A stretch of 64,000 nt of DNA from positions 310,001-374,000 of the forward strand of contig BQFW01000010.1 in assembly GCA_020891255.1 (NCBI GenBank), written 5' to 3'. How positions within the stretch are numbered: position 1 is the stretch's first letter; each line of letters starts with the position of its first letter. Origin of the DNA: Entomortierella parvispora E1425 (taxonomy: Eukaryota; Fungi; Mortierellomycota). The translations under genes and the position numbers were made by a program. Shown here one piece after another: positions 7,476 to 60,500 of the stretch. A model generated the notes under the pieces. The model saw nothing but the letters and a program-made list of their open reading frames with translations. It ran no database searches and was not told the origin of the DNA.

Positions 7476-7858
7476 CTAACACGATAGGTAATAAAAGTTG
7501 ATCTCTCTCCTCTCTTCTCTCTCGTTTGCGGTGATCGGACTGGACTCTATGATTCAGTTACGGGGGTGAACTTGGACACCATTGAGAGGTATGAGGTCCT
7601 TCAGAGATGACTTTTCTCATTGAGGGCATGAGAAGGGTCAACTAGTCTTTTTTTTTGACTTTATTCAATGTTTAACGAGCTACTGTGCAATCAAGGGGGA
7701 TGAGGTCAGGGAGACCAAGATCGTGCACATTTTCCGGATTTTAGATCTCGCTATCTTTCTGAGGTCATGTCCCTCAACAGTGTGTCTAAACTCTGCAATT
7801 GATGTCCGAGAATCATATCTGATGGCAATATTTCGCCGTTATCGTTTGGTCCCACACA

Positions 7859-9705: not shown

Positions 9706-10530
9706 TGTGGATGAGAAGAGATGCTGTGATGCTCAACAAAAAGAGTCAAGTGTGGGCAAAGAGCGAATGAAGGGAGCAAAGGAGGCAACAGAGGGACAAT
9801 GTTGGTTTTTGCCACCATTGCCACTGTCATTTGAATCACGTGGCTTCCGAATATCCTGGAGGTGCGTGCGGGAGCTTGCCATTGTCGAAAGGCGGGCGAA
9901 CGACCCCAATTGTCCTCATGGGACGAGAGCTGTTGACTGCAGGTCGCTACGACACGAATAAAAAGATTCAGTCAAACGATACTTCGAGAGAGCGGATCAA
10001 GCAGCGGTACTCCAGTGACAACGCGCGCTGATGACGCCCTTTTTTTGTTTTGTGAAATGATGTCATAATTATAGAATGAAGGTGGACATGAGTTCGAATG
10101 TGGGACCAGCTAATGGCAAGGTTGAACGAATGAGGGTGCCACAACAAAAACGCATGCATGGACACGCATTTTTCTCGAGGAAGCAGTGACCCTCTGGGGG
10201 GTGACACACACAGTCCATGCTCCGAGGATACAAAGAGGGGTCTGGGCTGAGCCAGCAACCTTGGGCGGGCTGGGGAATGGGAAGAGAGGCAGAGAGAGAC
10301 AAGAGAGACGTTCAATGAGAGCAGACGGCAAAAGGTGCGCTCTTCGATTGGGCGGATCCATTTAGAGACCGGCGGACTGGGGCGCGTGCACACCGCGCAT
10401 GGCGTGTCCTGTGGGCGGGGGAACCCTTGACTTCGCTTCATCGTCTTCATTTGTCCTCTTCCTGTTTTCTTCTTCTTTGCTCTCCTTCCTTCGCTTCCCA
10501 CTCACACTGACGATCCCCTGCCTTCACACC

Positions 10531-12798
10531 ATGCTCCTTCCGGAACTTTTCGCCCTCATCGCCCCTTACCTTGATCCCCCGTCCCTCGTCTCTGCCTCTC
10601 AGGTCTCCCGATGTTGGTTTACCAGTCTCACTCCGGTTCTCTGGTCGACCATCGCAGACTCTGACTGGATCCTCCCGCACTTCAGCCCTCGACAACTCTA
10701 TGCCCATGGTCACCTTGTTCACTCTCTCACCTGGGACTCGCTTCAAAGCCAGCCACACTCGTTATTCCTGACCCGCCCCCCTTCATTATTGCCCTCATCC
10801 TTGGAACAAGATGGAGATTCTGCAGCTGGACGCAAGGATAAAGAATACCATGACCATGGCACAGCCTTGCGTAAAATGTTGAGGGTCATCCCTGTCGACT
10901 CTGCATCGCGCCTTTCGATGCGCTGTCTCGTTCACATAGTGGGCAACTGCGCGCATCTCCAGCATTTGAAGCTTAACTTTGGCGCCTACAACGGAGATCC
11001 GGAGAGCGAAGAGGGCAGGATTGTTGGAGGAATGATCCAAGTCATTCGTAATTTGAGATGTCTTCAGCGCCTGGAGTTGGTGGCTCATTCAGTCTTGCTT
11101 CTTCCAGAGGACAAAAAGTTCAATGATGACAACAGCGAACAAGTCGCAGGAGGCCATTCAAATCAACCTGATCTGGGTTGCACAAGCACCGTATCTGCCT
11201 CCAGAGGACTGAATGTTCAATGGCTCCTCCAGGACTTGCCCAACCTTCAATCACTGGATCTGCGCGGTTCGGCCTTTTGGTTTGACATGCCGTCACCACG
11301 GTTGCCAACAGCATCCTCCACAGAAACATCAACAAGATCGGCAACAACATCCTCTGCAACAACAACAAAACCGACGTTTCCTATTCGCCATCTCTCACTC
11401 GAGCCCGCCGCCTCTGTTTTGACGGAGGAGGCTTTGATGTTTCTCATCGAGCAGTGCCCGCGCCTCACGTCCTTGGACTTGCCTGGAGGACTTGCTTGGG
11501 AGATCTCTCCCGCCTTCACAAAGCACTTGCAGACCTCCTGTCCCAACCTTGACTCCTTTTCAATCAATGCCTCATCTGCCTCTGTGCGAGGTCACAGCCT
11601 GATCCCTGATACTGCCGACCAGCCCCCTTTAGATACTACCAATGGAACCGATACCCCCACAGCACCATCATCAACACCACCAACACAAGCACAAGCAGTA
11701 GTCGGAGCCTCCCTGCATGTGCGCATCATTCCTGAAGATGACCGACTTGCATCGTTGATCCGAGGATTGACCCAAAGTACAGAAGTACCTTTGCGCAGTT
11801 TTGGTGCCCGCTCTTGTTATTTCGGAAACGCCTCGCTCCAAGCGTTGGAAGAGCTATGCCCCAGCTTGGAAAAACTCGATCTATCGTTGAACCGCGCCAG
11901 TAGCAGTGCTTTTGTGTCCAACCATCCTGCCCAGATAGCCCTAGCGACGGCGGTAACAACTGTGGTCTCGCAGGAACGGACAGTGCTCTCCAAGGATCGG
12001 TTGGTTCAGTATCTGAAAAGAGCCGAGAATTTGAAAGAGTTGATAGCCGAAGGTGTTTGGATCGACTTGGCAGATCTGCTACTACCTTCGCCACCGCCGT
12101 CAGAGGGGGATGAGTCGCAGCATGGAGGACATGGAGAACACGGAGAACCAGTGATGACCGCAGAGCTGGCGCAACAACAACAACACCAGCATTGGCCTGT
12201 GAGTGCGCCGACCGTTGAGCACTGGGCTTGTGCAACAACCTTGACACGCCTTGTCCTTGGATTCTCTGCGTTCAATCAGGCACACCAAGCACACTTGCAC
12301 TCTTATCCTTCTACATCGTCAACCGTCCTGTATACCTTCCTGTCGAGTCTGCGATCTCTTCAAGTGCTGAAGATCTCGAACACTACCCTGACCGACTTTC
12401 AAACGCCTAATACCTACCTTTCAACGTCATCATTACCACAGCCATCGTCATTCCACCTCTTGTCTGCCTTGCGAGACTTGCGTGAATTCGATATCGAAAC
12501 CTGCTCGTATTCTCCCTCAGGGCTCATGAACAAGGGCACGATCCAATGGATGGTGGGTCAGGCCTGGCCAAAGCTCGAATCCTTGCAGATCCACCGTTTG
12601 GGCGTTAGTCAAGAACGAGAACTCCATGGATGGCTCAAGGAAGTGGGAAGAGACCGTCTTGTTGTCAACGGGTGTTGTAATCGTGTTCTCCACAGCGCCA
12701 ACGGAAGCAATGGCGGCAGCGAGGGCGGACTTGGTGGATCTCAGGAACTCTCGGTCCTCTCTTCGTTAAGGTTGATGAACATGATGATGTCCTATTAA
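10531..12798 (+). CDS. F-box/LRR (RNI-like) protein with low-complexity inserts (subfamily D, intact)
   Basis: Start context cacaccATG at 10531. F-box MLLPELFALIAPYLDPPSLVSASQVSRCWFTSLTPVLW; LRR units CAHLQHLKL, LPNLQSLDLRG, CPRLTSLDL, CPSLEKLDLS; HWACATTLTRL. Confidence 0.85.
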   Translation: MLLPELFALIAPYLDPPSLVSASQVSRCWFTSLTPVLWSTIADSDWILPHFSPRQLYAHGHLVHSLTWDSLQSQPHSLFLTRPPSLLPSSLEQDGDSAAGRKDKEYHDHGTALRKMLRVIPVDSASRLSMRCLVHIVGNCAHLQHLKLNFGAYNGDPESEEGRIVGGMIQVIRNLRCLQRLELVAHSVLLLPEDKKFNDDNSEQVAGGHSNQPDLGCTSTVSASRGLNVQWLLQDLPNLQSLDLRGSAFWFDMPSPRLPTASSTETSTRSATTSSATTTKPTFPIRHLSLEPAASVLTEEALMFLIEQCPRLTSLDLPGGLAWEISPAFTKHLQTSCPNLDSFSINASSASVRGHSLIPDTADQPPLDTTNGTDTPTAPSSTPPTQAQAVVGASLHVRIIPEDDRLASLIRGLTQSTEVPLRSFGARSCYFGNASLQALEELCPSLEKLDLSLNRASSSAFVSNHPAQIALATAVTTVVSQERTVLSKDRLVQYLKRAENLKELIAEGVWIDLADLLLPSPPPSEGDESQHGGHGEHGEPVMTAELAQQQQHQHWPVSAPTVEHWACATTLTRLVLGFSAFNQAHQAHLHSYPSTSSTVLYTFLSSLRSLQVLKISNTTLTDFQTPNTYLSTSSLPQPSSFHLLSALRDLREFDIETCSYSPSGLMNKGTIQWMVGQAWPKLESLQIHRLGVSQERELHGWLKEVGRDRLVVNGCCNRVLHSANGSNGGSEGGLGGSQELSVLSSLRLMNMMMSY

Positions 12799-44741: not shown

Positions 44742-47501
44742 ATGTCTCTCTCCATGGATCTCTCCGACATTCCCGAGGTTCTTGTCATGGTGTCCAAGTA
44801 CCTGACAACCGAGGACTTGGCACGCGCCGTGCGAGTATCGCGTCATTGGTATCGCCATTTGCATCCAGAACTCTGGTCCTGCGTTTATATTATCGAGTTC
44901 AGAAGCCGCTTCGGGAATGCTGGCCCTCAGTTCCTCCGATCCCTGATCCAATATGGTCATCATATCCGCGAGTTCTGTGTTCATGGTACAAAACCCTTGG
45001 ACCTCCTCCGCCCTCGTCTTGGTCACCTGCCTGGAAACGACTTTTGTCCTCTCAGCAATCTCACCAAGCTGATTCTCCTGGATTACAATGACAGGGTTTG
45101 GCCCGTGGGACCAGACAACTCTTGGCCTGCTCAGCAGCGTCTCATCGGTCTTATCCTCCGTGCAAGGGCAGATTTTGAGTTGGTGAGCACCATCCAGAAC
45201 GAGATGTACAACAAGATTGAGAACGAGAAAAAGAACGAAGGGGCCCAGGACGAAATATGCGATGGCGATGAAGACGAAGAGAGCGACTATTCTGCAGATA
45301 TTGTGCTCCCGCCAGTTGAGGACGAGGAGACATTTGACGATTACTGGGATCAGCCAATTGAGATTATGATCCACCCAACCCACTTCGACCCTATGATGCA
45401 TCTCTTACGACACAACTGCCATCTCCATACCTTGACCGTTCACCATTTCCCGAGCTGGTCCGAGCAGGCTATTAGAGCGATTTGCCGCGGAGGATTACCG
45501 GTGCTGCAGGAGTTGGATTTGGGAAGCGAGCAATCCACCATGGTCAGCACACGTCTCATGAGGATCCTTCTGGATGGCCTGACCCCGAAACTGAAAAAAC
45601 TCAACTTCTGGATTGCCCAACTTATCGAAGATGACAGTGCAAAGATGCAGACTCCAGAAGGTCTCGCAAATTTTTGGCACCAGCGTTATTTAAGAGCCCA
45701 TCACGACTCCACGATTATGAAAGGAGTAGAGAACATGTCGGAAGAAGATCGTTGTGTGGAATCGAAGCATTTTGAAAGCTATGAATTGAAGGAGCTTTCG
45801 ATCGGTCGGACGAGTGCAGACAGAAACGAGAGGAGTATTGAACAAGTTGGCGCCATTCGATCATTGGTACCTTTTTTGAGAAGGTGCCATCGCCTGGAGC
45901 GATTGGCTTTTGCAGAATTCTCAGAGGGCGGTGGTAATCTTTGGGAGTTGACTTCGACATTACACGACTTTTGTCCACAACTCAATGCCTTCAAGGTCCT
46001 TTCGGCGTTCGATACATACCCCCGACATATTCCGGATCAAATTTTTGAGCAGCTTTTGCTGGCCGCACGGAGAGGGTTGAAGAATGCGGATTTGAGGTTC
46101 TCGGATGAGGCATCCCTGCCGTCGATCCAAGCTTTCATGGGAACTGCCGACAGCAACGAGATTGAGACAAATCGACGCCTTAAACCTATGGAATGGATAT
46201 CCTACCCACCATCAGGATTCGAAAAACACCTGGCTACTCTGGAAGAAGAGCGCCAAAGCAAGGAGGCGACTGGTGTTGCAATCATTGCTACGAGGGCGAT
46301 ATCCAAGAGCTGGCCTCAGGTCAAACCCAAGCTCTTGGGGGACATTCAGGAAATTGTGATCCGTCCTCGACTTCAAATCCTGGAGACACTGAACATCGCC
46401 GGCTGCCCATTGATTACGAGCCGCAACATTCAAACCATTCTTTGCAGCTGTCCTGTCTTGAGGGTGTTCGTGGCGATCAGTGGGAGAGTCTCAACTCTTG
46501 GTCCTTTTTTGACGGTCCAGCATATGAAAAGACCCGTCGTGTCATTTGTCGGTTCCTTCTCGGATCAAGACGCCAATGACGGTAAAGACGAAGACTTGGA
46601 AGACTGGCAACGGCCGAAATGGGTATGCCTGGGTTTGGAGGTTCTATGTTTGCGGATTGAACTTACTTCTCGGCCAGATTTACGACTCAGAGTAATCGAG
46701 CCACCTCAAAGCGTCGGCGGAGACACCAATAATACCGATTTGCAGTGGTCTGTGGATCCCAAGGCGATGGAATACTGTCGGTCAGAGCAGAGACTTGTTT
46801 ACCGCGAGATTGGTCGGCTTTCACGTTTGAGGAAATTGAGGTTGGGGCAGTGTTATTCTTTCTCTCAGTGGCGTACCAATGAATACTGCCCTGCAACCTG
46901 CGACTTTTTGGACACCACGTCACTGAATTCTGTCTGCGATGTTGTTGCTGAGGCAAAGACAACGGACTCGTATGACTTGTCGGGATCAATCACCTCCAGA
47001 GCCATCGTAGACGTTAGTGTATACCAATACCAGTCTTTAGAGTTCAGTCTCGCAAGTGGCTTAGGGTTGATGTTGCAAGGGACGCCTCGATTGGAGATCC
47101 TGGAGGTACCAGAGATGGCGACTCGGATCGGACCGAACGAGATTCAGGCCATGATCACCGCCTGGCCTAGACTGAGACAGCTAGGACTACGATCATTTAC
47201 CAAGGTCAATTGGGAGGGGGTGGTCGACTTTAAGGGCGACAGCTTTACGCCAACCGAGGTGCCTCCACCACCTGGTCTTCCATCAAGTCTGATGACATCA
47301 TTAGCAGAGGCGATGCAGTTTGTCGCTGGCTCTAAACTGGAAAGACCGTTGACCGAGCGCAGGAATATAATTGAAGACGAGTGCCTGACCTGGCTGAAAG
47401 ATCATTGTCCCGATGTGGATATCAAAGGTGCTGAGGGATACTCTGAATTGGAGGACTGCATCCCAGGTAGTTTTGCCGATGTGGATTTCACACGCTTGTG
47501 A
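44742..47501 (+). CDS. F-box protein subfamily B copy 2 (intact, 919 aa, intronless)
   Basis: F-box MDLSDIPEVLVMVSKYLTTEDLARAVRVSRHWYRHLHPELWS; LRR-like LQELDLGS and LETLNIAGCP...IQTILCSCPVLR; KWVCLGLEVL; QSLEFSLASGLGLML. Confidence 0.9.
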   Translation: MSLSMDLSDIPEVLVMVSKYLTTEDLARAVRVSRHWYRHLHPELWSCVYIIEFRSRFGNAGPQFLRSLIQYGHHIREFCVHGTKPLDLLRPRLGHLPGNDFCPLSNLTKLILLDYNDRVWPVGPDNSWPAQQRLIGLILRARADFELVSTIQNEMYNKIENEKKNEGAQDEICDGDEDEESDYSADIVLPPVEDEETFDDYWDQPIEIMIHPTHFDPMMHLLRHNCHLHTLTVHHFPSWSEQAIRAICRGGLPVLQELDLGSEQSTMVSTRLMRILLDGLTPKLKKLNFWIAQLIEDDSAKMQTPEGLANFWHQRYLRAHHDSTIMKGVENMSEEDRCVESKHFESYELKELSIGRTSADRNERSIEQVGAIRSLVPFLRRCHRLERLAFAEFSEGGGNLWELTSTLHDFCPQLNAFKVLSAFDTYPRHIPDQIFEQLLLAARRGLKNADLRFSDEASLPSIQAFMGTADSNEIETNRRLKPMEWISYPPSGFEKHLATLEEERQSKEATGVAIIATRAISKSWPQVKPKLLGDIQEIVIRPRLQILETLNIAGCPLITSRNIQTILCSCPVLRVFVAISGRVSTLGPFLTVQHMKRPVVSFVGSFSDQDANDGKDEDLEDWQRPKWVCLGLEVLCLRIELTSRPDLRLRVIEPPQSVGGDTNNTDLQWSVDPKAMEYCRSEQRLVYREIGRLSRLRKLRLGQCYSFSQWRTNEYCPATCDFLDTTSLNSVCDVVAEAKTTDSYDLSGSITSRAIVDVSVYQYQSLEFSLASGLGLMLQGTPRLEILEVPEMATRIGPNEIQAMITAWPRLRQLGLRSFTKVNWEGVVDFKGDSFTPTEVPPPPGLPSSLMTSLAEAMQFVAGSKLERPLTERRNIIEDECLTWLKDHCPDVDIKGAEGYSELEDCIPGSFADVDFTRL

Positions 47502-47647
47502 TAGAACATTTCAACGATTCAACATTTGACGATTTGACGGCCACAAAGCATTGAAATGAAAAAAAAAAAAAAAAAAAAAAGAGTCTGTGCACGCGCTTGC
47601 AATAAAGATCCGGGACATAAAGAGCCTGTTGTTTCATTTGGTTATAC

Positions 47648-48607
47648 CTTCTCGGATCCAGGCGTCAAGGATGAATTGAGAAAGAGCCAGTTCGGAGTAT
47701 GGGATGGATAAAGACGAGGACTTGGAGGACTGGCAACGACCGAAATGGGTATGTCTGGCTTTGGAGGTACTCTGTTTGAGGATTGAGCTTACAACCCGAC
47801 CTGATATATAGCTTGAGATGACCGAGTCACCGGATACCTTGCTACCTCACGTGTCGAATGAAGGTATTCAAACCACTTTTGTGCAAGGCCTGTGGATCCC
47901 AAGGCGATGGAATCCTGTCTAGCAGAGCAGAGACTTGTGTACCGATAAGTTGGCCGGCTGAAACGGTTCAGGAAATTGCGGTTGGGACAGTGTTACTTTC
48001 TCTATCAATGGCCAGACAACGCATACAACCCTGCAACCTGCAACTTTCTGGACACCGCGTCACTGGCTCACAGTGCTGATACTGGCACAGAAAGTGGAGC
48101 AGTCTCTGCAGAGACAGTAAATTCGTATGGCTTATCGGCATCAGCCGCCTCCAGAGCAATCCTAAACGCTGGCGTGTATCAGTCCTTGGAGTTCAGTCTC
48201 GCAAGTAGCTTAGGGCTGATGTTACATGGGACGCCACGACTGGAGATCCTGGATGTGCCAGAGATGGCAACTCGGATCGGACTGAAGGAGATCCAGGCCA
48301 TGATCACAGCTTGGCCCAAGTTGAGGAGACTAGGACTGAAATCGTACACGGAGGTCAATTGGAAGGGGTGGTGGTCAACCACAAGGAGAACGATATTTGG
48401 TCCGCTAAGGCACCACTGCCACGCACTATTCCATCGCGTCTGATCAGCCCGCTAGAAGAGGCCATCCACTTTATTGCAGGCTCCAAATCGAAACGGCCGA
48501 TGACTGAACGCAGGGATATGATCGAAGACGAGTACATGACCTGGCTGAAGGATCAATGTCCCGGCGTCAATTTCAAGGGAGCTGGAGGAGAAATGATTTG
48601 GAGGTGA
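47648..48607 (+). pseudogene. Orphan 3' third of an F-box subfamily B gene
   Basis: It starts with ccttctcggatc, matching B2 at ~46555, then DEDLEDWQRPKWVCLALEVLCLRIEL. It has stops (ata-tag, cga-taa) and frameshifts. There is no 5' part. Confidence 0.85.
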
Positions 48608-49064
48608 GCAGCCAAGATGACATTCCCCCTGTGGAGTGGCGGCGATGGGATGTTGAGCAATGGGATTAGAATAGTTTGATGCTATTCCATTTGGCAGATT
48701 TAGTTCCAGACCTGTGGCAAAGAACGCAAATCATGAGTCCTTTTAGTGAGACGTGCTCTTGTAGTCGCGTCCAAGCGCGCGAAATGTTTGAAATGAAATA
48801 AAGGCATCTATCTTCACTCGTGAGAACTTGTGATGGATACTTTTGTGAATGGAAAGTCAACAAACCTCTCCAAGGTGGCGGGAAGAAGTTAGGCAGTGTT
48901 TGCACTAAATCGATCATACGTTCCGTCCGAAATGACTGAGTTTCCATTGCTGCAGGAGAAAAAAAATAAAAAAAAAATAAAACAGTCGGAGCGCTTACAC
49001 GCAGCATTCTCACGCCTTGTAAAATGTCCATCAGGCAATCTTCCTTGCTCCATCTCCCATTCTC

Positions 49065-49113
49065 CATCCCTCATCCCTCATCCTTCATCCTTCATCCTTC
49101 ATCCTTCATTCAT
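49065..49113 (+). promoter_or_regulatory. (CATCCTT)n tract upstream of F-box B3
   Basis: catccct catccct catcctt x4 catt catc. Confidence 0.5.
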
Positions 49114-49157
49114 CATAATCACTCCAGTCTAATCTACCTAACTTCCCTGTCTCCATA

Positions 49158-50750
49158 ATGTCAGTCTCGATGGATCTATCCGATGTTCCTGAGATTCTTG
49201 TCATGGTGTCCAAGTACCTGCAAGTCAAATCTCTTTCAAGAGCCACACGAGTGTCGCGTCAATGGCATCGATTTTTGCTCCCGGAACTCTGGTCCTGTCT
49301 TCATATTGTCGGATACAAAAGCCGCTTCGGGATGACTGGCCCCAAGTTCCTCCGATCCTTGTTCCGATACGGCCATTTTGTCCGTATGTTCTGCACCTTG
49401 GACCACCTACACCTGGACCTGTTCCGACCCCATCCTGGCAACCATCCTAGAAATGACCTCTGTCCTCTGAACAAACTCACAAAGTTGATCCTTCCAAACT
49501 TTGATTCAAACGACTGGGAAACGGGACCAGGACTTCACACTCCGTCAGCCAAGCAGCGTATCGTCGGTCTTCTCCTCCTCGCAAGGGCCGACTATGAGTT
49601 GGTGAACAAGATCCAAGATGATGTTTACCGCAGGATAGATTCAAGCCCGAGGCAGCGACGACGACGACGACAATGGCGATGGCGAAGGCATTTATTTCAC
49701 TCATGACACACTCCCGCCAGTTGAGGATGAGGATGACTTTGACGAGCACTGGGTGCCAAAGGTGGATGTCATGATCCATCCGCCTTACTTCGATCCTCTG
49801 ATGCAGCTCCTGCGACATAACCGCCAAGTCTGCTCCTTGACCGTCCACCGTTTCCCCAGATGGTCTGAGCAAGCCATAAGATCAATTTGTCGTGAAGGAT
49901 TGCCTTTGCTGCAGGAATTGGATTTGTCGAGAAAACAGCCAGCGATGGTGATCACCCGTCTTACGAGGATCCTCTTGGAGGGTCTCACTCTTAAATTAAG
50001 GAGACTCAAGATTCATATCGACCCTCTGCTACAAGATGACAGCTTATGGATGCAAAGTAAAGAAGGCCTGGAGAACTTTTGGCACCGGCGATATCGAGGC
50101 AATCAGAACTGCCCCAAGACAAAAGACGGATTAACGGAATAATCAGAGGAAGTACGTCGACTTGGACTGGAGTGGGCGGAGATGTATCAATTGAAGGAGC
50201 TTAGAATCGACGGGACAACATTTAGGACACGTCACCGTTGGACAGAACAGCCTGGCGCTCTTCGATCTTTGGTTCCTTACTTGAGACGGTGCTGACAACT
50301 GGAACGATTGGCACTTATAGCATTGCCGCAGGGAGATCGTCCTCTTTGGGAATAGACCTCGACATTTATGGCTTTTGTCCTCGGTTCAATGCTTTTGAGA
50401 CTTGCAGAGTGGAAGCGGAAAACATCGGCACCGCCCAGAATGAATTTTTTGAGTAAATCCTGCTACCATCCCGGAAAGGCTGGAAAAGTTTCGACTTGGG
50501 CACTTTCGACAGTCTGTCCGCCTTGTCGATCAACGCCTTCGCAGGAGCAACAGATGGCAAGGAAATCGCAGCGGACCAACGCGAAATTCAAAAAAAAAAA
50601 AAAAAAAAATGAATATCCCACCCTCCATTGACAACAGAACTACGACTGGCTGGTCTATATGGAATATACCAAAGCGACGGTACAGGGAACGTGAAGGTCC
50701 ATGCAACCCTCGTTGGTTCATCGCGTCAGATCGATTGGTCCTTGGAGCTA
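49158..50750 (+). pseudogene. F-box subfamily B copy 3, disrupted and 3'-truncated
   Basis: MSVSMDLSDVPEILVMVSKYL... with a frameshift at ~49640, in-frame stops (TAA 50140 and further TGA/TAG/TAA), and an A20 run at 50590-50609. Similarity to B2 fades at ~50700-50750, just before the inverted repeat. Confidence 0.85.
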
Positions 50751-50887
50751 AAATAAGGATGAATCATGTTTAACAATATGAGATTGTTCCTCGCAGAATA
50801 GAATGTAGAATCGCGTTCGGGAGACCCCTCGACTAAAAAAGGGCAAAAAAATAGACAAATTGAGGCATCTCAGATAGAGGGAAATTG

Positions 50888-52481
50888 TCAGACTGGACCG
50901 TGCACAAGGAGACCAAAAAGAAAAAAAAGAAAGAAATCAGCGAAACAACAGCGGGCGGGCTCAAAATGGGCGAAGCACGTTTTCCCCCTGGCGTTCTCGC
51001 GCATATGTTGCCCTCTTCTCGTCTTTCTCATGCCTCCGTCTCTCAATGCCTGGCCTGCATTCTCTGCATCTCTCCATTCCACCATCCATTCTCCATCACC
51101 CCTCTCTCTCTCTCTCTCATGCAGGGACACCAGCCTCCATTCACTCCATCTCATTCCTTACTTCATTCGCTCAGTGCAGGCATCTCTCGACTCATATGCC
51201 ATTGGCGCGTTTGACAGCACTAATTCAGAGCAGACCACTTGCGTCCAAGAGGCCTGATCTCCTTTACAATTGCCACCATGCCCACCGTTCAATTCAACGA
51301 GATCATTCACACACAAAGTCAACATTTATCATCCAAATTAGTCCATTATTTTGTCAGAATTAAAGAGAGAAAACAAGAATTTTAATAGAGTGCTTTGAAA
51401 GGGAGTACTATGGAGGGGAAGGGAGTACTTTGGAAGGGAGGAGAGTGCTGTGGAAGTGGAAAAGATAAGAAAATGTAAGTTTCAAAGAAAAAAAATGGTT
51501 TGTGGAAGGGATAAAGTGAGTTGGCGTACCAAGTCCCCCGATGTTTGTTATAGATGCTGACGACTGCGTGCCATCACCACATCCCATCGGGATCATGGAT
51601 TTGTGGAAGAAACAAAGAGCAGTACCAAGTCCCCGATGTTCGCTGACGACTCTGAGCCATCACCTCATCACATCGGCATCATGGATGACCGCCCACTATC
51701 TTAACTACACTAGGGCTAAACTAACTAGTCTAAAAGCGAAGGAAGGGGGACGGAAGAAAAGGACGTTTTCTCTCTTGATTCTTGTTTCTTGATTCTTGTT
51801 CTTGTTTCTTGGATGGGGGGCTCAAGACCAAAGAGGGTAGGGAGGCAACTGCATTTGGGAGGCAGGCCATGATCAAGCCGAGGAGGCCAAGTGGTCTTGA
51901 GGGCCAAGGTCAAGTCCGAAGAGTCAGATAACCTTGAGGCCGAGGCTTGGGCCGGAGCGTGCAAACGGGCAGGCGGTCTTGTGGCCGAGGTAGGTCTTGA
52001 GGGCCGAGGTCAAGCCATGAGAAGGCAGACAACTTTGATGCCGAGCCTTGAACTTGAAAAGGCAGGCAAGTTTGCGGCCAAAGACTTGAAAAGGGCAGGC
52101 AGGTTTGCGGCCAAAGACTTGGAAGGGCAGGCAGGTTTGCGGCCAAAGACTTGGAAGGGCAGGCAGGTTTGCGGCCAAAGACTTGGAAGGGCAGGCAGGT
52201 TTGCGGCCAAAGACTTGGAAGGGCAGGAAAGGTGGGCCAGGAGATCAAGACCATTGGGACCGGGGCCAATGAGGGCAGGACCGAAGTTGAAAAGCCGATG
52301 TCGTTGGTCCGGAGACACTTGTTGCTGGCCGAGGGGAGGATGGCAGCATGGTGGTGTGTGCTTGGTGTGCTTAGTGCGCTTTGTGTGTGTGGAAGGGGAG
52401 TGAGGAAGAAATGAAGGATGAGGAGCAAAAAAAAAGAGGGGAATCATGGGGGGTATTTGTATGAAAGTATGAGAGTGGATT
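50888..52481 (+). repeat. Left arm of a large inverted duplication (~1.6 kb)
   Basis: It is the reverse complement of 52931..54511. The outer end tcagactggaccgtgcacaaggagacc and inner end gtatttgtatgaaagt...ggatt both match. By eye there are 5 substitutions in 51901-52070, plus indels elsewhere. Confidence 0.95.
52061..52221 (+). repeat. Tandem repeat of 32-bp unit GGCAGGCAGGTTTGCGGCCAAAGACTTGGAAG, 5 copies
   Basis: Units start at 52061 (33-bp variant), 52094, 52126, 52158 and 52190, with no spacers between them. Confidence 0.95.
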
Positions 52482-52930
52482 GTTCGGATGGGCCGTTGTT
52501 TTGTTTTCATCCGCCAAGCCATCATTGTTTTTCAGAATTTCACCAAATTTCAAAAAAAAAGCGAAAACGCGTCGCCGTCTGCCACCTTATTTTCGTCCTC
52601 CGTGGCAAAAATGGCCCGTTCACGCGTGGCCACTTCCCTTATTTTCATCCTCCATGGCAAAATGGCACGTCTGATCTCGCGTCCACGCGCAGTCAGTTCT
52701 CTTATTTTCGCTCCACACCCAAAAGTTAACGTCTGCTCGCTCGCTTATCTCCTCTTTCACATGTTTCGACAGGCCAATCGCCATCCTTCCTTCCTTCACG
52801 ACAGCATCGTTCCTCCGTTACCTTATCCTTAGACCAATCAATGTCATCCCTCCCTCATGTCGCCATGTCGCTATCTCGCTATCGCATCGCACATCTGAGA
52901 CCGCAGTCGATAGGCGATAGCAGAGAGATG

Positions 52931-54511
52931 AATCCACTTTCATACAAATACCTCCCATGATTCCCCTCTTTTTTTTGCTCCTCATCCTTCATTTCTTCCT
53001 CACTCCCCTTCCACACACACAAAGCGCACTAAGCACACCAAGCACACACCACCATGCTGCCATCCTCCCCTCGGCCAGCAACAAGTGTCTCCGGACCAAC
53101 GACATCGGCTTTTCAACTTCGGTCCTGCCCTCATTGGCCCCGGTCCCAATGGTCTTGATCTCCTGGCCCACCTTTCCTGCCCTTCCAAGTCTTTGGCCGC
53201 AAACCTGCCTGCCCTTCCAAGTCTTTGGCCGCAAACCTGCCTGCCCTTCCAAGTCTTTGGCCGCAAACTTGCCTGCCTTTTCAAGTTCAAGGCTCGGCCT
53301 CCAAGTTGTCTGCCTTCTCATGGCTTGACCTCGGCCCTCAAGACCTACCTCGGCCACAATACCGCCTGTCCGTTTGCACGCTCCGGCCCAAGCCTTGGCC
53401 TCAAGGTTATCTGACTCTTCGGACTTGACCTTGGCCCTCAAGACCACCTGGCCTCCTCGGCTTGATCATGGCCTGCCTCCCAAATGCAGTTGCCTCCTGC
53501 CCTCTTTGGTCTTGAGCCCCCCATCCAAGAAACAAGAAACAAGAATCAAGAAACAAGAAACAAGAATCAAGAAACAAGAATCAAGAGAGAGAACATCCTT
53601 TTCTTCCGTCCCCCTTCCTTCCCCCTTCCTTCGCTTCTAGACTAGTTAGTTTAGCCCTAGTGTAGTTAGGATAGTGGGCGGTCATCCATGATGCCGATGT
53701 GATGAGGTGATGGCTCAGAGTCGTCAGCGAACATCGGGGACTTGGTACTGCTCTTTGTTTCTTCCACAAATCCATGATCCCGATGGGATGTGGTGATGGC
53801 ACGCAGTCGTCAGCATCTATAACAAACATCGGGGGACTTGGTACGCCAACTCACTTTATCCCTTCCACAAACCATTTTTTTTCTTTGAAACTTACCTTTT
53901 CTAATCTTCTTTTCCACTTCCAACGCACTCTCCTCCCTTCCAAAGTACTCTCTTCCCTTCCATAGCACTCCCTTTCAAAGCACTCTATTAAAATTCTTGT
54001 TTTCTCTCTTTAATTCTGACAAAATAATGGACTAATTTGGATGATAAAAACAAACATCAGATCCTTTGACCCGCGTACTGAGGTTGACTTTGTGTGTGAA
54101 CGATCTTGTTGAATTGAACGGTGGGCATGGCGGCAATTGTAAAGGATATCAGCCCTCTTGGACGCAAGTGGTCTGCTCTGAATTAGTGCTGTCAAACGCG
54201 CCAATGGCATATGAGTCGAGAGATGCCTGCACTGAGCGAATGAAGTAAGGAATGAGATGGAGTGAATGGAGGCTGGTGTCCCTGCATGAGAGAGAGAGAG
54301 GGGTGATGGAGAATGGATGGTGGAATGGAGAGATGCAGGGAATGCAGGCCAGGCATTGAGAGACGGAGGCATGAGAAAGACGAGAAGAGGGCAACAGGCG
54401 CGAGAACGCCAGGGGAAAACGTGCTTCGCCCATTTTGAGCCCGCCCGCTGTTGTTTCGCTGATTTCTTTCTTTTTTTTCTTTTTGGTCTCCTTGTGCACG
54501 GTCCAGTCTGA
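52931..54511 (-). repeat. Right arm of the large inverted duplication
   Basis: Mirror of 50888..52481. It has 3 copies of the 32-bp unit (53182-53277), a longer AAGAA(A/T)C 7-mer tract (53526-53585), and a ~34-nt segment (~54050-54085) missing from the left arm. Confidence 0.95.
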
Positions 54512-55181
54512 AATGAACAAAGCCCAAACCCCACTCCAAGGCCTGTTGAAACCGATGGCTGTTATAATGACATGGCTGTTGGTGATGTTGTGGTGTGGAT
54601 CGCCTGCTTTGCAGACAATCGATCTATCTGTGGATGAACTTGTACTTGTGTCGAGCATGAAGAAGAGAGGGAGAAAAAGAGAAGATACCACTGAGATAGA
54701 GTTTTGCACAGCCTGACTTTTGTCTCACACTCACTGGTAGGCAAAGTCTAGACCATGGGCCTTGGGTAGCTGTTTGTATCCGCCTCGGAGAAAGGGGTAC
54801 AGATCCATCGCACACGCGCCTACTGGTCCAATGTGATTTGCCCTGTCCAATATGACGATATGACTGTTTGCCTGTGTGCACATGTGTCTGCGGGAAGTTC
54901 TTTCCTCCCTGTCCTTCTCCCTTTGCTCCAAGTCCATCTACCTTTTTCTCTCCTCTTCCTTCTTCATTGCATCTATCGCTGCGGCAGTAGGCGTCTTGTG
55001 TACCTAGAGAATAGTACACAGCAGTGACACCACCAGCAGCAACAAATCTCACCTCCATTCCATTCATCTCTTTTGTTCATTCTCCTTGTGTCATTCCTGC
55101 ATTCCATTTTCAAGTAGATCAACCAATTCTCAAAAACCCACCCACCCCTTTAATAAACATGATCCTTTTTTTTTTGCAAGA

Positions 55182-55931
55182 TCAAAAGCCGACCTTGATG
55201 TTGTAGCCGCCAGGTACCTTGGTGGACGAAAAGCCGGTTTTGCCTTTGCATCCGGCATCATTGTATTCAAAAATGCCATAGACACTCCCGTTACCAGTGC
55301 CAGCGGTGGTCGATGTGGGATCATAAAATGTAGATTCTGAGTGAGGCAGGGTGCCACAGACGATATCAGCCTTCGATTTGCCGTTCCAAGGGTAATACTC
55401 TACAAAACCGGTGTTGGCATTGTTGAGCTTTCCGGACCCCTTGGGCAATGTCCACTCTCCGATGACAGTGGAGGTCCCCGTCACGGCATCGACGAGAGCT
55501 CCTCTCCAGGTTGTGTCTTGAACGAGCTGTACCACCAAGTTATAGGTATGATCGTAGTTTCCGATGATGTCTACCGCACAGCTGACACCTGGTCCATAGT
55601 CGGCCCCATTGTGGCAGTTTGGGTGGGTGGTAGTGGTTCCATTCTGGAAGGAGGAGAAGGCTGCGTGGACGATGCTATTGCCCTTGGAGTCGCTTCGAGG
55701 TTGAAGCCCAGTATAGCCCACGTCACGAACATTATGGAAGGAGAACATCTGAGAGAAATAGTAGCCTGCAACATGAGGTGACTTTGCCATGTTGAGAGGA
55801 AAAGTGATGTCGTTCAGGCCATCGGAGGGAAACGTTAGAAATCTCCAATGGTTCCCAACAAGGTGGCCATTGGATGCGAAGGCCAGTGAAGGCACGCAAA
55901 TCGCAAGGGTGGCAAAGATGGAAAGCTTCAT
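55182..55931 (-). CDS. Secreted protein, 249 aa, intronless (DUF3472-like family, tentative)
   Basis: Signal peptide MKLSIFATLAICVPSLAFA; motifs GYYFSQMF, GYTGLQPR, FSSFQNGTTTTHPNCHNGADYGPGVSC and GFVEYYPWN; four Cys. The family name is from recollection and was not searched. Confidence 0.75.
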   Translation of the reverse strand: MKLSIFATLAICVPSLAFASNGHLVGNHWRFLTFPSDGLNDITFPLNMAKSPHVAGYYFSQMFSFHNVRDVGYTGLQPRSDSKGNSIVHAAFSSFQNGTTTTHPNCHNGADYGPGVSCAVDIIGNYDHTYNLVVQLVQDTTWRGALVDAVTGTSTVIGEWTLPKGSGKLNNANTGFVEYYPWNGKSKADIVCGTLPHSESTFYDPTSTTAGTGNGSVYGIFEYNDAGCKGKTGFSSTKVPGGYNIKVGF

Positions 55932-56214
55932 TGTGGAGAGAGCGTGCTGTTCTGTTTTAGTAAAGGTTTGGTGAGCAGAGAGGTTTGTGACAGGGGAATC
56001 AAAGGTTTTTAGGGGGGTTTTTTTTTATCGGTCCACGAACATGGCTCTAGCGATTCCGTTGCCTCGGAACGCTCAAACCAGGAATTTCCATTTTCGTGCA
56101 GTTGTGTATCCCAGAACAGAACCAGATCGCTGGTACAGGGAGTGTTGGGGCACAATCCCAAGTTTTTGATCGCCTTATTATCTCAGCGGTTGAACTTGTT
56201 GTCAACGGAGACTG

Positions 56215-56450
56215 CTCGAGTGACCCTTAACCGCAGTTGCCAGGGCCTGAATAAAAAAATATGTCCACTTGTGCCGCGGTATGTCCATCTTCTGTGTCCC
56301 TGTGTCCATCTGTGAACAAAGACAGTGAACTCCCTCTTTCTTCTTTCACACGCGCTGCGCGGTCATGGATCGACCCCTTTTTTCTTTTTCTCTTTCAAGT
56401 GCTGTGCATGTGTCATTGTCTACCTATGAACGCATTCTTCATTCATTAGT
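56215..56450 (+). repeat. Diverged direct repeat, copy 1 (copy 2 at ~57151-57390)
   Basis: Shared blocks in the same order: ctcgag..tgacccttaaccgcag, tctgtgtccctgt, ctgtgaacaaagaca, cacgcgct, ggatcgacccctttttt, tgtgcatgtgt. Confidence 0.85.
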
Positions 56451-56526
56451 TGAGCGAATGAGATGCATGGATCAGAAGTCCTTGCACGCTCGTCGCCAAC
56501 GAAGCACTGGCTTGATTCGGTGACGC

Positions 56527-56573
56527 AGCAAATACGATTTTAGGAAGTATTTCTACCTAAAATCGTATTTGCT
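56527..56573. repeat. Perfect 18-bp inverted repeat with 11-nt loop
   Basis: AGCAAATACGATTTTAGG-aagtatttcta-CCTAAAATCGTATTTGCT. Confidence 0.95.
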
Positions 56574-56619
56574 TCAGAATAGCAAGTACGATGACGGTAG
56601 ATTTTCATTCGTCACTTTT

Positions 56620-56770
56620 CATTTCGCAAAAAAAACAGAGAGATGGCGAAAGATGAGGCATGCAGAAGAATGCCACCTGGGAGCAAAGCCACCCTGTTGC
56701 CCAGAAACGTGCTTCGCCCATTTTGAGCCCGCTGCTGTTTTGCTTTTTTCTGTTCCATTTTCTTCTCATA
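56620..56770 (-). repeat. Third, partial copy of the outer end of the inverted-repeat arm
   Basis: The 28-nt AAACGTGCTTCGCCCATTTTGAGCCCGC at 56705-56732 is identical to 54417-54444 and to the reverse complement of 50955-50982. The flanks are weakly similar. Confidence 0.85.
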
Positions 56771-57150
56771 GAAGTCCGTCCTCCAACTGTACTTGTATTT
56801 TCTTATGAGCGACATGCCTTTACAGCTTCATCATGTGAGCCCATTGTCCTACATGCCTCCCCTGCTTGGAGTCATTAGTGTGCACTATGGCAATGGTTGT
56901 CACCAACTCGCTTGCTATGCTAGTTCTAGAAATGTAGGATAGGGCTCGGGGCTTGCCTCTAACCCCCCCTTTATTTCACATTTTCTAGCTCTTCAAAAAG
57001 TCGCAGACAGGCGCAACAACCATAGCTACGAATAATACTTGTAGAATATACGACTCTAGCCTTCAGTACAGCCAAGAGAGAAAAAAAGACAGAGAGAGAA
57101 TGGTTCAAATGAGAGACAAAAAGGAAGGCACAGCGCGCACTCAATCCAAT

Positions 57151-57390
57151 CTCGAGAATTGACCCTTAACCGCAGCTGGACTGTCTGTGTCCCTGTAGGC
57201 GTCCATCGTCTGTTTTCTGTGTGTGTCCCTGTGAACAAAGACACGCCCCTTTTTTTTCTCTTTCGCACGCGCTTCTCCGCCTGTCCGCGTGCTTTGTGCG
57301 CGTGGTCTTGGATCGACCCCTTTTTTCTGTTGTCTTGTGCATGTGTACTTGTGTGCCTTGCATGTGAATGCAGCTCATTCATCCTTCTTT
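57151..57390 (+). repeat. Diverged direct repeat, copy 2, upstream of the PA14-domain gene
   Basis: See 56215..56450. Confidence 0.85.
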
Positions 57391-57573
57391 TCATTCATCA
57401 CCATTGTCATTCACTCTTTTCATTCGTGTGTTTCATTCGTGTGTTCTACTCTCCTTACTTCTTCCCTTCTCTCATTCCTTGAAGCCACCCTAGCTGCATC
57501 CCTAAATCCCTTTATCTTCACTCTGACGCTCACCTCGACCACTTGCTTCAGATCTTTCTTCCCAAACCAAGCC

Positions 57574-60500
57574 ATGCTCGGGACAACAGCTGCACAAGCA
57601 GGTATGTCGCCTTGTCTAGCTCATGTCGTGCTACTCTTACCTTCATGGCCCGCGAGCTCTAAATAAACCACAACGCTCTTCTAACCATGTAGATTTCCAA
57701 GCGCGTCCGTGGAGCAGCTTTGATACAACTGGAGCCAACCATGAAGACCTGGTTGCAGCTCAGCCGCCTTTACGCACCAAAGCCTCGTCGACATCCATCG
57801 CATCCGATACTTCCACAGGATCTGACACCACGTTTCTCTCCACTCTTTCATTTTCCACTACCACCGGCGCTCACTTCAGAACGCAAACCCAGGAGGAGCT
57901 ATTTCGTAACGGGGGAGTCGATGCTGGCGCAGACGATGAACAAGGGGACAATGAGGATGGTGGTTATGATCAGGATGAAGATGCAGAGAGCTTGGATTTA
58001 GACACGCTGGAGGTCGCCATACTCACGCCTAGAGAGAAAATGCGCATCATTACTCCTGGAGATCATCTTTCTTTAACACAACCACTGCATCGAAGGCAAG
58101 AGTCCCATTCGAGGGATCCATTTTTTCCTATCGATGAAATGGCGCAGGAGGAAGGAGAGGAGCAATACTCATCTTTGAAGTCACTGTCATTTTCCCCCAC
58201 TTCAAAACGACATACAAAGTCTTCAAGTCAACATAGCACAGATCGAGACACCATCAAAGGATACCATTCGATTGATGCCTCTTTATCGTCACTTTCAAAG
58301 GATATATCTTTCAAGAGCCGACGACTTCGATCTGATCGACAGCAGAACTCGCAGGACACCAAGTTAGCCCAGAAATATGAGCAGGAGCTCAGCCATCGTA
58401 GTGTTGAAGATTGGCGAGAAAGTCATCGGGAAGCCAGCGATGGCGCAGATGACGTTGCTGAAGAAGAGGACCACCAACCTACAGACATGCAGCTTGCATC
58501 CCCAGACTACAGAAAGAGCATGGCGCCGAGTCTCCAGAGTGATGTTGCAACGGATCATCTCTCTAGTCCCACAAAGGGCCGCGGTTCGTCTGTCTACCTG
58601 ACGTCAGAGACTCCTTACACGAACTTGTTGCGGGATGCGACCCTGATCATCGAACAGCAACAGCAGAGGCAGCCTGGACCAAGCACATGGATCCGAGGCG
58701 ACCATGGTTCCGACGAAGGTTCAAGCACCGCCCCTTCTAGAGATCCTAAAGCACAAGCATCGGAATCGAACCAGCGTGGAGCTGTCGGTATCGCACCTTT
58801 GGACTCTACGGGGTCAGCCACTAAGGAGCGCACCTCAGCCCCCAGCAACAGGAGCACACCGAAACGCTCGCGATCTCGACGCTTTTCCGCCCCAGGAAAC
58901 CAATTCTCTAGCCAAAGCTCCTTGTCTTCTCTATCACAGTCCACTAGAGCTGGAGCAGCTGGTGGACTGAAAATGTCTTCCGATAAGCAACCAAAAGATG
59001 AGGACATTCAAAAGACTCAGGCACGAGCACCCCAGGCTCTGAGTGAATATGAGACCAGGTTGCCCAGGGACCCAAGTGGCGGTGGAGATAGTGACGGCGA
59101 TGATTGTGGAGGCGCCAATCAGCAATCAAAAGCAGCCGGGTCATCCAAGCATGCGACGAATCTGTATCCACTACAACACCATCCAACCATGCAAGCTAGC
59201 GTGAATGCGACGTTGACGACAACGACAACAGATGGGCTTGTGCCGCCATCACTCCACCTCAACAATCAGTTACAGCAACGACATGACTTTCGACAAGGTG
59301 TCGTCTTTGAGTATTACGAGGGAGAATGGGACTGGCTGCCTAACTTTGATGAAATGCGACCCCTCCATGCAGGAATTGTCGGAAACTTTATGATTGACGA
59401 TACGACAGAGTGTGATCTCTTTCGTCCTCAAGGCCAGGAATTCATGGGAGCATCGCGACAAGGCAACAATAACCGCAGTCGACCAGCCAAAGAATCTGGC
59501 AATTTTGCAGTGCGATTCACGACCCATATTGACATTACCCAGGATGGTGTCTATTCCTTTTGGCTATCGTCCAATGATGGATCTGTTCTGTACATTGAAA
59601 ACAACTTGGTGGTCGAGAACGACGGGATGCATTACGCGACTGAGGTCGAGGGAAGGGTCTTGTTGCAGGCTGGGAAACATGCCATGACGGTCGAGTTCTT
59701 CCACAAAAATGGAAAGATGCTGGAGGGATTCCGATCCACGGGGCCGAGTCTTGTCGTCAGCTACCGTAAACCAGGACCAGTTTGGTCCTTTGGTCTTGCT
59801 GCTGGTCCTAAGAGGGTGATCAAGTCTTCCAACCTATTCTATGATCATGGAGGTAAAAACGCGTTTCGAGACTCGAAAGGAGGGATGCCAAGATCTCTGA
59901 TAGAAACCCCAGGGACGGGACTAACATCTCATCCGTTTGCATTGATTTCAATTACAGATGCCCGTCTTCGAAACTTATTGAACGAGTTCGGCGTGGATTC
60001 TATGGACAGGCATAGTCAGGGTCAGATGTCCCCTCTTTCTTACAGAGACCCTTCGTCAGATGGACGGAGCTGGCATAAGGAAATGAACAACTCTAATCAT
60101 GGTTACGGTCAAGATCTACGGTCACCGGATCAGCTTCAAACATCGGGGAACGGCGGTCGCGTGCCTGCTAGGCACCGGGTTATGAGTGGCGATATGGGTC
60201 AAATGCAACCCTCCACTCGGGAGTTGCTTGTTCAGATGGAAAACGCGAAAACGACTATCAAGGATCTCGAGAAGGTAAGAGTGACCTTTTGGCGAAGACA
60301 GCAGTTCGCTCTCAATTGAGAATCGGTCCATCAATCTTTTGTTTGAAAGATTTTAATTTTTGACCATCTATGGTTTTGGTGCCTATCATTTGTCCATAGA
60401 TCATCCAAGACCAGGCAGAGACGCACAAGAAAAAGATGTCTGATCTTTATGACATTCTGCAGGATACTCAGGCGCAAGTAGACCGATTCAAAACGGGATT

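Follow-up and report, generated by a model that had tools for sequence, protein, structure and literature searches.

The window analysed here, a 64,000-nt stretch of contig BQFW01000010.1 of Entomortierella parvispora E1425 (contig position = window position + 310000), contains a long palindrome just downstream of a truncated F-box gene. This annotated 130-aa F-box-like gene (B3; 49158-50808, forward strand) is a shortened paralogue of the gene at 44742-47501, which encodes 919 aa. B3 resembles its paralogues up to an A20 tract close to 50590, whereas the annotated CDS runs to 50808; the palindrome therefore starts 80-300 nt after the truncation and not exactly at it, as the first-pass annotation had stated. 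The missing remainder of B3, which would mark an insertion into the gene, was not found to the right of the palindrome.

Repeat finding and global alignment place the left arm at 50888-52468 (1,581 nt, forward strand) and the portion of the right arm that pairs with it at 52936-54511 (1,576 nt, reverse strand), with a spacer of 467 nt (52469-52935) between them. The arms are 98.2% identical over aligned bases, with 1,480 matches and 27 mismatches, although some of these single-base differences could be leftover Nanopore errors, and the pairing is far above chance level. The earlier description of near-identical inverted arms around a spacer of approximately 450 bp is thus confirmed. Gaps occupy 143 alignment columns and correspond to 11 indels, the largest of which measure 65, 33, 22 and 11 nt. 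The spacer is asymmetric, without internal inverted symmetry, and contains three repeats of approximately 55 nt and two ACGCGT motifs; the arms continue into it in degenerate form, with a 9-nt deletion, which leaves approximately 430 nt truly unpaired. No inverted homology, even weak, was found beyond the ends of the two arms.

Tandem arrays with periods of 20, 7/13, 19, 32 and 9 nt are present inside the arms, in addition to two units of approximately 100 nt. The 20-nt array (51399-51461, forward strand; mirror at 53917-53970) marks the outer edge of the part of the arm that is multi-copy and apparently covered by RNA. The two tandem ~100-nt units form a conserved core at 51491-51700 (forward strand), which is mirrored in the right arm at 53670-53880 (reverse strand). 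A 7/13/20-nt array is located at 51773-51811 (forward strand), and its mirror at 53526-53586 is 22 nt longer. The 32-nt array comprises 5.5 copies in the left arm (52052-52227, forward strand) and 3.5 copies in its right-arm counterpart (53176-53286), which explains the 65-nt length difference between the arms, equivalent to two 32-nt units. No Pfam domain is found among the arm and spacer ORFs, and the element contains no tRNA or Rfam match. It encodes nothing for its own movement, in agreement with the first-pass statement that no transposase, reverse transcriptase or recombinase ORF is present.

The palindrome is a genuine chromosomal structure. Illumina unitigs of the flanks, at a single-copy depth of approximately 77, extend to 50909 and 54521 (X1). 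Additionally, a unitig covering 54019-54161 (X1 record 6), also at single-copy depth (79.5), shows no differences from the assembly and confirms the right-arm-specific 33-nt segment together with three right-arm-private substitutions, which bears out the earlier argument that the differences between the arms speak against a simple read chimera.

A sister palindrome of 5.2 kb lies on the same contig, 79 kb upstream (L001 6998-12224). Its arms measure 2.38 kb and are 98-100% identical, and its spacer measures 469 nt; in both copies, long arms form the bulk of the element and flank a short middle domain. Window positions 50884-54652 align to L001 7749-11591 at 92-97% identity, spacer included. 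The two spacers are 97.6% identical, the arm-spacer junctions are identical on both sides, and the same 9-nt asymmetry occurs at the arm-spacer region in both palindromes, whereas the sequences directly bordering the two palindromes are unrelated to each other. The window palindrome and its sister derive from one ancestral palindrome, and the shared spacer and identical junctions indicate that the palindromic layout predates the separation of the two copies. Within the 64-kb window, no third copy of the arm sequence is present. In the annotation of the sister palindrome, a 131-aa "hypothetical protein" (P0001) spans the 32-nt repeats.

A comparison of the ends of the two palindromes reveals that the window copy is a truncated version of its longer sister. 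The sister arms reach 750 nt further outward than the left arm in the window, which is cut at approximately 50884-50888 relative to the sister, with sister homology beginning at approximately 50884. The homology of the right arm to the sister runs 145 nt past 54511, to approximately 54656, and this unpaired outward continuation (54512-54656, reverse strand) is homologous to both sister arms at approximately 92%, with a 20-nt insertion. Given these outward extensions of 750 nt and 145 nt, positions 50888 and 54511 are not the ends of the element. Relative to the sister arms, the window copy falls short by 750 nt on the left and by 610 nt on the right; its two break points are thus unequal, and they share just 2-3 nt of microhomology.

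The alignment of the four arms contains 29 sites with an AABB pattern, at which both window arms differ from both sister arms. Private sites number 15 in the right arm of the window, 10 in its left arm and 1 in a sister arm; no ABAB or ABBA site is present within the arms, and ABAB sites occur only at the spacer edge. The sister arms differ at one column of the paired region, and the window arms are 97.1% identical in this alignment, whose slices take in edges of the flank and the spacer. Between the two copies, arms on the same side are approximately 97% alike and those on opposite sides approximately 96%. The 29 shared differences, together with the absence of arm-specific shared sites, indicate that the arms within each palindrome have been homogenised since the copies separated. 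The homogenising process is most likely arm-to-arm gene conversion; alternatively, the arms may have been born identical at every copying event. No RIP-like mutation bias is observed (30 transitions and 24 transversions). A core block of approximately 200 nt shows 0-1 variable columns among the four arms, versus 3-40 in the neighbouring 100-nt windows.

Illumina depth (X1), relative to single copy, is approximately 2-5 on the outer arms, 4-21 on the inner arms and 9-12 on the spacer. Two copies are read directly; the others are deduced by summing the depth of contigs, a measure that may be raised by tandem repeats and by double placement. The conserved core of the right arm lies on one unitig of 244 nt (X1 record 5, depth 1360), at approximately 17 times single-copy depth. 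Three non-reference spacer contigs carry variants absent from L001, and depth and variant contigs indicate at least three additional spacer-bearing copies besides the two loci with unrelated immediate flanks. The first-pass annotation had named a single genomic copy as the finding that would speak against a transposon; a sister palindrome is present. A second sample (X3) carries the inner arms, the spacer and the outer arms and almost nothing on the flanks; its conserved core is 97% identical, whereas its unique flanks are less than 85% alike. Both the inner arms (approximately 51396-52490 and the mirror) and the spacer belong, as modules, to a small and apparently dispersed family of non-coding repeats, which probably has several to approximately ten further copies in the E1425 genome and more in the second sample, and the outer arms occur essentially in the two sisters only. 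Protein searches with the arm ORFs (word-indexed and exhaustive HMMER) return only P0001, apart from unrelated low-complexity repeats. Exact-protein look-ups of the arm and spacer ORFs of the window yield no matches, and metagenome DNA scans yield only one 24-nt chance match (L002).

Sequencing run X2 exhibits a summed depth of 5,000-57,000 on the inner arms. The outermost 500 nt of either arm reach only 6-58 and the F-box gene approximately 12, and the spacer stays at 0. The run was automatically guessed to be DNA, and we infer that it is probably the RNA-seq of the strain, because the depth is beyond DNA coverage, the spacer is absent and the genome paper reports an RNA library (PMC8759367). 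Contrary to this assignment, two low-depth contigs scale like DNA copy number, with a depth of 24 for the two-copy outer arm of the sister and 15 for a single-copy variant. The possibility that X2 is a Nanopore DNA run was rejected, as a summed depth of 45,000-58,000 is more than 430-fold coverage of 20 copies could yield and the spacer, though multi-copy, is missing. Read as RNA, X2 points to abundant transcription of the inner arm module and to none of the spacer. The rDNA spacer was also considered as a source of the abundant RNA and was rejected because the ~17-copy core unitig is just 244 nt long and the copies diverge directly outside the core, unlike homogenised rDNA units.

In light of these results, we favour, with moderate confidence, the interpretation that the palindrome is a truncated sister of the 5.2-kb palindrome and a relic of a small dispersed, foldback-like, non-coding repeat family, and that it is neither a transposon with defined ends nor a local fold-back. 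An ancestral palindrome would have given rise to the two copies on the same contig, and the copy in the window may be either a DNA-level partial copy or an eroded relic of a longer palindrome. The unequal break points, the short microhomology and the absence of a target-site duplication (TSD) point to a partial copy or relic rather than to the insertion of a transposon with defined ends. The arms within each palindrome would then have been kept alike, most likely by conversion between them, and the two arms may act as separate transcription units that give the same RNA, rather than as one hairpin transcript. The literature searched contains no account of elements of this type from Mortierellaceae or Mucoromycota.

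A possible, though doubtful, alternative is that the locus is functional, with each arm holding one of two genes for an abundant non-coding RNA, driven from or ending at the shared spacer, in which the palindrome is kept by selection and the copies by gene conversion. The near-invariance of the 200-nt block among the four arms is consistent with this, as are the single high-depth unitig of the core mirror, its 97% identity in X3 next to diverged flanks, the repeated spacer motifs including the two ACGCGT sites, and the X2 depth, which is very high on precisely those arm portions that are multi-copy, with none on the spacer. However, no Rfam match is found, and the folding of the core units is unremarkable (z-scores +1.5 to -2.0), with no compensatory changes between units. 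Moreover, the X2 profile would bear on this only as RNA, and high transcript levels and conserved cores are common in selfish repeats too. An equally tentative proposal views the palindromes as miniature "ampliconic" loci, in which each arm would be a gene for an abundant, conserved non-coding RNA around the invariant pair of ~100-nt hairpin units, arm-to-arm gene conversion would keep the layout, and whole palindromes would be the units by which the family spreads, with no transposase involved.

It is rather improbable that the palindrome is an intact or recently active non-autonomous Foldback/MULE-like transposon with ends at 50888 and 54511 and with its transposase supplied in trans from another locus. 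Long arms with tandem arrays around a short non-coding middle are indeed known from FB and Tetris (PMC4079207), the modules are multi-copy and present in the second sample with different flanks, and the two readable copies have unrelated flanks. These observations are offset by the ends, since 50888 and 54511 are merely where the shorter arm stops. No TSD is present at 50888/54511 or 50884/54656, and no direct repeat beyond a TA dinucleotide is present at the sister ends (6996/12228), a test that covers two copies, one of them truncated; the first-pass remark that there is no convincing TSD holds at all of these sites. The TA on both sides of the sister also fits a Tc1/mariner-type insertion, although such a match arises by chance in 1 of 16 cases. 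Conserved outermost termini common to the copies are absent, as the window copy ends inside the sister arms. TIR transposons share their outer ends, whereas here the outermost arm sequence is the least repeated part by depth, which is the opposite pattern, and no transposase domain is found in the element. A true transposon whose intact ends lie unseen would fit the rise in copy number in X3 and the dispersed distribution. The first-pass proposal of an undescribed fold-back element therefore stands in part: the family is repeated, non-coding and palindromic, with long arms that hold tandem sub-repeats, but its termini do not lie at 50888 and 54511 and neither copy shows a TSD.

Very little probability attaches to a hairpin-RNA/siRNA locus, in which one transcript of the two arms and the intervening spacer would be cut up by the RNAi machinery. 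Complementary arms of 1.6 kb around a short loop do provide a suitable geometry. However, no transcript through arm, spacer and arm is seen in X2, a result that is valid only if X2 is RNA; in that case, the zero depth of the spacer against thousands on the inner arms argues against read-through hairpin RNA, and the low depth on the outer 500 nt of the arms also stands against it. Additionally, symmetric transcription of inverted arms yields identical, not complementary, RNAs. A local inverted duplication formed at the site, for example by hairpin-primed break repair beside the truncated F-box gene, is just as unlikely and is already largely refuted. The position of the palindrome beside this gene, in a region rich in rearranged F-box paralogues, and the lack of a TSD would suit such an event, but the sister 79 kb away shares the spacer, the junctions and the 9-nt asymmetry, so the inverted layout is older than the window copy, and the immediate flanks are not part of the arms. 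The first-pass suggestions of a young fold-back event and of a duplication made in place consequently find no support. An artefact of assembly from chimeric fold-back reads is the least credible explanation. The assembly is Nanopore-based (SMARTdenovo, polished with Pilon; PMC8759367) and several 1-nt arm differences fall in homopolymers, but single-copy-depth Illumina unitigs back the left junction, the right flank and the right-arm-private variants, the spacer is unique and asymmetric, the palindrome is embedded in a 1.8-Mb contig, and the independent sister locus shows identical architecture.

If the interpretation as a truncated relic of a dispersed palindromic family holds, the locus would provide a small, tractable case of concerted evolution of palindrome arms in an early-diverging fungus, and would indicate that palindromic repeats in such a fungus can multiply, by spreading or by copying, with none of the usual marks of transposition. 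The two palindromes of the family lie 79 kb apart, each with both orientations, which predisposes the F-box cluster between them to inversion, deletion or duplication; the pair may help to account for the rearranged state of this region. The apparent very high level of inner-arm RNA, if confirmed, would suggest either a non-coding RNA that is abundant and unannotated or a repeat promoter of high activity. At present, the finding is mainly one of repeat annotation.

Among known systems, the FB, Tetris and Galileo elements resemble the palindrome in that their arms consist of domains including internal tandem repeats, their short middle is non-coding, and few copies are structurally complete while many are rearranged (PMC4079207); Tetris of D. 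virilis has very long inverted repeats of up to 1,735 bp (PMC4079207). These elements have conserved outer ends and TSDs of 7-10 bp, whereas the two fungal copies show no TSD, end at different points and have the outer arm as their least repeated part. An autonomous partner of a Foldback-type element would encode a transposase of the Mutator/P superfamily, and none lies inside the window palindrome. DIRS-like retroelements likewise combine inverted repeats with the absence of a TSD, but no reverse transcriptase or tyrosine recombinase ORF is present here, the arms make up nearly the whole element, and the spacer has no match to the arm ends of the kind expected for a DIRS-type internal complementary region. 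The hairpin-RNA small-RNA loci of fungi and plants share the inverted-repeat geometry, with long dsRNA possible upon transcription through it; in contrast, there is no sign of transcription across the spacer here in X2, read as RNA. The palindromes of mammalian X and Y chromosomes and willow sex chromosomes also have near-identical arms that flank a unique spacer, and their arms evolve together within each palindrome, as at the 29 sites here, a signature credited to arm-to-arm gene conversion (for example PMC8600007 and PMC8327919). The E. parvispora palindrome is 10- to 1000-fold smaller, non-coding, autosomal and fungal, and it appears to belong to a dispersed repeat family rather than being a single conserved orthologous locus. 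If the "ampliconic" proposal were true, the family would be a fungal, non-coding counterpart of the sex-chromosome palindromes.

A repeat search of 49000-56500 reveals that the left arm of the palindrome (50888-52468) is tiled against the right arm (52936-54511) by a chain of inverted pairs that are 96-100% complementary; on the BQFW01000010.1 record, the structure occupies 360888-364511. In a global alignment of the left arm with the reverse-complemented right arm, 1,480 positions match and 27 do not, and 11 indels account for 143 gap columns, which gives 98.2% identity over aligned bases; the longest indel, 65 nt, corresponds to two units of a 32-nt array, and the next are 33, 22, and 11 nt. 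The first-pass description of near-identical inverted arms around a short spacer (467 nt, 52469-52935), which differ by substitutions, indels, and repeat copy number, is borne out by these values. The sequence itself shows a degenerate continuation of the arms slightly towards the centre, in which the right side has a 9-nt deletion. In addition to two ~100-nt units, the arms contain tandem repeats whose periods are 20, 7/13, 19, 32, and 9 nt. No ORF in the arms or spacer has a Pfam match, in agreement with the proposed lack of coding capacity for mobility, and neither a tRNA nor an Rfam family is found in the palindrome, nor a further copy of it within the 64-kb window. The spacer contains two exact ACGCGT motifs (52567 and 52622) in successive ~55-nt repeats and CGCG cores at 52678 and 52686, a series that could be a candidate repeated factor-binding site.

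The E1425 assembly is Nanopore-based and Pilon-polished, and Illumina libraries of both DNA and RNA were reported with the genome (PMC8759367). Read support was assessed with Logan contigs from four runs placed on 49900-55500, of which X1 was treated as the Illumina DNA library on the basis of its behaviour. The X1 left-flank unitigs reach 50909 at a depth of 76-79, and the right flank from 54521 onward lies in a 10.5-kb contig of the same depth that spans the true right junction at ~54656. A 143-nt unitig (depth 79.5) exactly matches 54019-54161 and takes in a 33-nt segment found only in the right arm, along with three substitutions private to that arm. These single-copy flank and arm-private unitigs indicate two distinct arms, each joined at its outer end to unique flank. 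The structure is real and an assembly artefact is very unlikely; some 1-nt homopolymer differences between the arms may be polishing errors. In X1 and in X2, a run from the same sample and study, a contig of single-copy depth joins 51957 and 53319 on opposite strands; the preferred interpretation is a different member of the family, whose tandem array is ~61 nt shorter, instead of a local rearrangement.

The single database protein matched by an arm ORF, the E. parvispora hypothetical protein P0001, is annotated at a locus on the same contig (L001; record 268580-288975, reversed). L001 contains, 28 kb before the window start, a larger palindrome with arms at 6998-9373 and 9843-12224 (2.38 kb, 98-100% identical) and a 469-nt spacer. 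Window positions 50884-54652 align with L001 7749-11591 at 92-97% identity, uninterrupted across the spacer; the two spacers share 97.6% identity, and the arm-spacer junctions coincide on both sides. The window left arm ends at 50884-50888, and the right arm extends, unpaired, to ~54656; this extension resembles both sister arms at ~92% identity, apart from a 20-nt insertion. Positions 50888 and 54511 are thus not the ends of an element but the point at which the shorter arm stops. Compared with the sister, the window left arm is shorter by ~750 nt and the right arm by ~610 nt; microhomology to the sister sequence at the window junctions amounts to 2-3 nt. The best account of the window structure is a truncated sister copy of the longer palindrome. 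A target-site duplication, already reported as unconvincing at the window copy, is absent from both palindromes; the sister is bordered by TA on both sides, a 1-in-16 coincidence.

The immediate flanks of the two palindromes are unrelated, with F-box paralogues further out around both and an F-box ORF just left of each, within an F-box-rich region. At L001 5821-6825, an ORF of 334 aa, which has an F-box-like domain (Pfam, E = 4e-8) and is absent from the gene calls of the locus, ends 170 nt before the sister palindrome; each palindrome thus closely follows an F-box ORF, which in both cases lies on the same side of the spacer. The sisters occupy record positions 276752-281978 and 360888-364656, with their spacers in opposite chromosomal orientation. 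Each carries the repeat in both orientations, and at 79 kb apart they could serve as substrates through which the F-box-rich segment between them is inverted or deleted.

The palindrome had been thought to start exactly where the F-box B3 gene is truncated. However, the similarity of B3 to its paralogues ends near 50590 at an A20 tract and its annotated CDS ends at 50808, which places the palindrome start 80-300 nt after the truncation. The tract (50590-50609) is the point where B3 diverges from the paralogues B1 and B2, and B2 has its own A-rich tract at 47553-47582. The 280 nt between the A20 tract and the palindrome have no match elsewhere in the window, and the Illumina contig depth over 50648-50834 is ~2.6 times single copy (204 vs 78), which indicates further genomic copies of part of the left flank. 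On the other side, 2.2 kb downstream, a 66-nt block at 56705-56766 in right-arm orientation is ~80% identical to the outer-arm start (50919-50982 / 54417-54480), including 22 consecutive identical bases; the similarity breaks off abruptly at both sides, and the block could be a fragment left as a relic, or else a regulatory motif common to both places.

To compare the two palindromes, the four arms were aligned and substitution patterns were counted inside the paired region. Both window arms differ from both sister arms at 29 sites, the window right arm alone at 15, the window left arm alone at 10, and one sister arm alone at 1, and no site separates left arms from right arms. The left-versus-right pattern is confined to the first ~20 spacer columns, as expected of a shared asymmetric centre, which indicates that the palindromic layout is older than the split of the two copies and refutes a young fold-back duplication made at this site. 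Judged from the alignment, the changes fixed in both arms of a copy since the split point to concerted evolution, most simply through arm-to-arm gene conversion, which has been described for large sex-chromosome palindromes; alternatively, one arm may have been regenerated from the other. Transitions (30) and transversions (24) among the arm substitutions form an ordinary spectrum, free of RIP-like bias.

Copy numbers were estimated roughly from summed X1 contig depths relative to the single-copy flanks (~77). Depth is ~2-5 times single copy over the outer arms (50888-51395 and 54014-54574), for which the two sisters alone would supply 4 copies, 4-21 times over the inner arms, and 9-12 times over the spacer. 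A 244-nt unitig of depth 1360 (~17 copies) covers the conserved core, the two ~100-nt units in each arm (51491-51700; mirror 53670-53880); within 51491-51690 the four arms show 0-1 variable columns, compared with 3-40 in neighbouring 100-nt windows. Three non-reference spacer contigs bear variants differing from those of the sister, which indicates at least three further spacer copies, and in two contigs the spacer sequence beginning at 52495 is linked to unrelated DNA, so some copies lack this arm next to the spacer. In X3, from a different sample under the same species label, contigs with 85-97% identity cover the arms, both inner and outer, and the spacer (the core in a 250-nt contig of depth 1419 with 8 consistent differences) and almost nothing of the unique flanks. 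The palindrome modules are therefore probably a dispersed repeat family, at these rough depths, with abundance varying between isolates.

In X2, depth is ~12 on the F-box gene and 6-58 on the outer arms, drops to 0 on the spacer and right flank, and sums to 5,000-57,000 across 51396-52517 and 52892-54013, with a peak at one position of 58,910 in 11 contigs. Nanopore DNA does not account for this profile, since twenty arm copies at 430-fold coverage give at most ~8,600 and a multi-copy spacer should not vanish. X2 is most likely, with good confidence, the RNA-HiSeq library; against this, the depths of two thinly covered contigs follow DNA copy number (24 on the outer arm of the sister, present in two copies, and 15 on a variant present once). 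Should X2 be RNA, the inner-arm module of the family would be very abundantly transcribed, with transcripts that end at the spacer and the outer 500 nt of the arms hardly expressed. The direction cues are mixed: P0001 is annotated in the outward direction, inward transcription would be in line with a TATA-like, AT-rich stretch immediately beyond the RNA edge, and an ATTAAA on the outward strand falls outside the covered region. P0001 (EMPS_07317, 131 aa), present once per arm at L001 8820-9215 and 10001-10396, spans the 32-nt tandem repeat, which cycles through all three frames; because no genuine homologue is found among 1.8 billion representatives either, it is probably a spurious ORF. It is possible, if rather unlikely, that the palindromes are non-coding RNA gene pairs kept by gene conversion. 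Inverted arms transcribed symmetrically give identical, not complementary, RNAs, which together with the zero spacer coverage in the putative RNA run leaves a hairpin RNA without support.

The parent family would be a small, dispersed one of non-coding, foldback-like repeats with homogenised arms, whose inner arms are probably strongly transcribed. The full-text library searched yielded no account of foldback or inverted-repeat elements from Mortierellaceae or Mucoromycota. The closest anatomy is that of foldback-type transposons such as Tetris, in which terminal inverted repeats of up to 1,735 bp contain a flanking domain, tandem repeats, and an inner domain, with a non-coding middle, 8-9-bp target-site duplications, and few complete copies (PMC4079207). 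The suggestion of an undescribed fold-back element holds for this anatomy and for the repeated, non-coding family; however, the two copies have neither target-site duplications nor shared outer termini, so a defined foldback transposon is not supported and the palindrome is not filed as a Foldback or MULE element. A DIRS-like relic is dismissed, as there is no internal complementary region and no RT or recombinase ORF. The homogenised arms resemble those of palindromes under arm-to-arm gene conversion, whereas the present structures are far smaller, non-coding, and part of a probably dispersed family.
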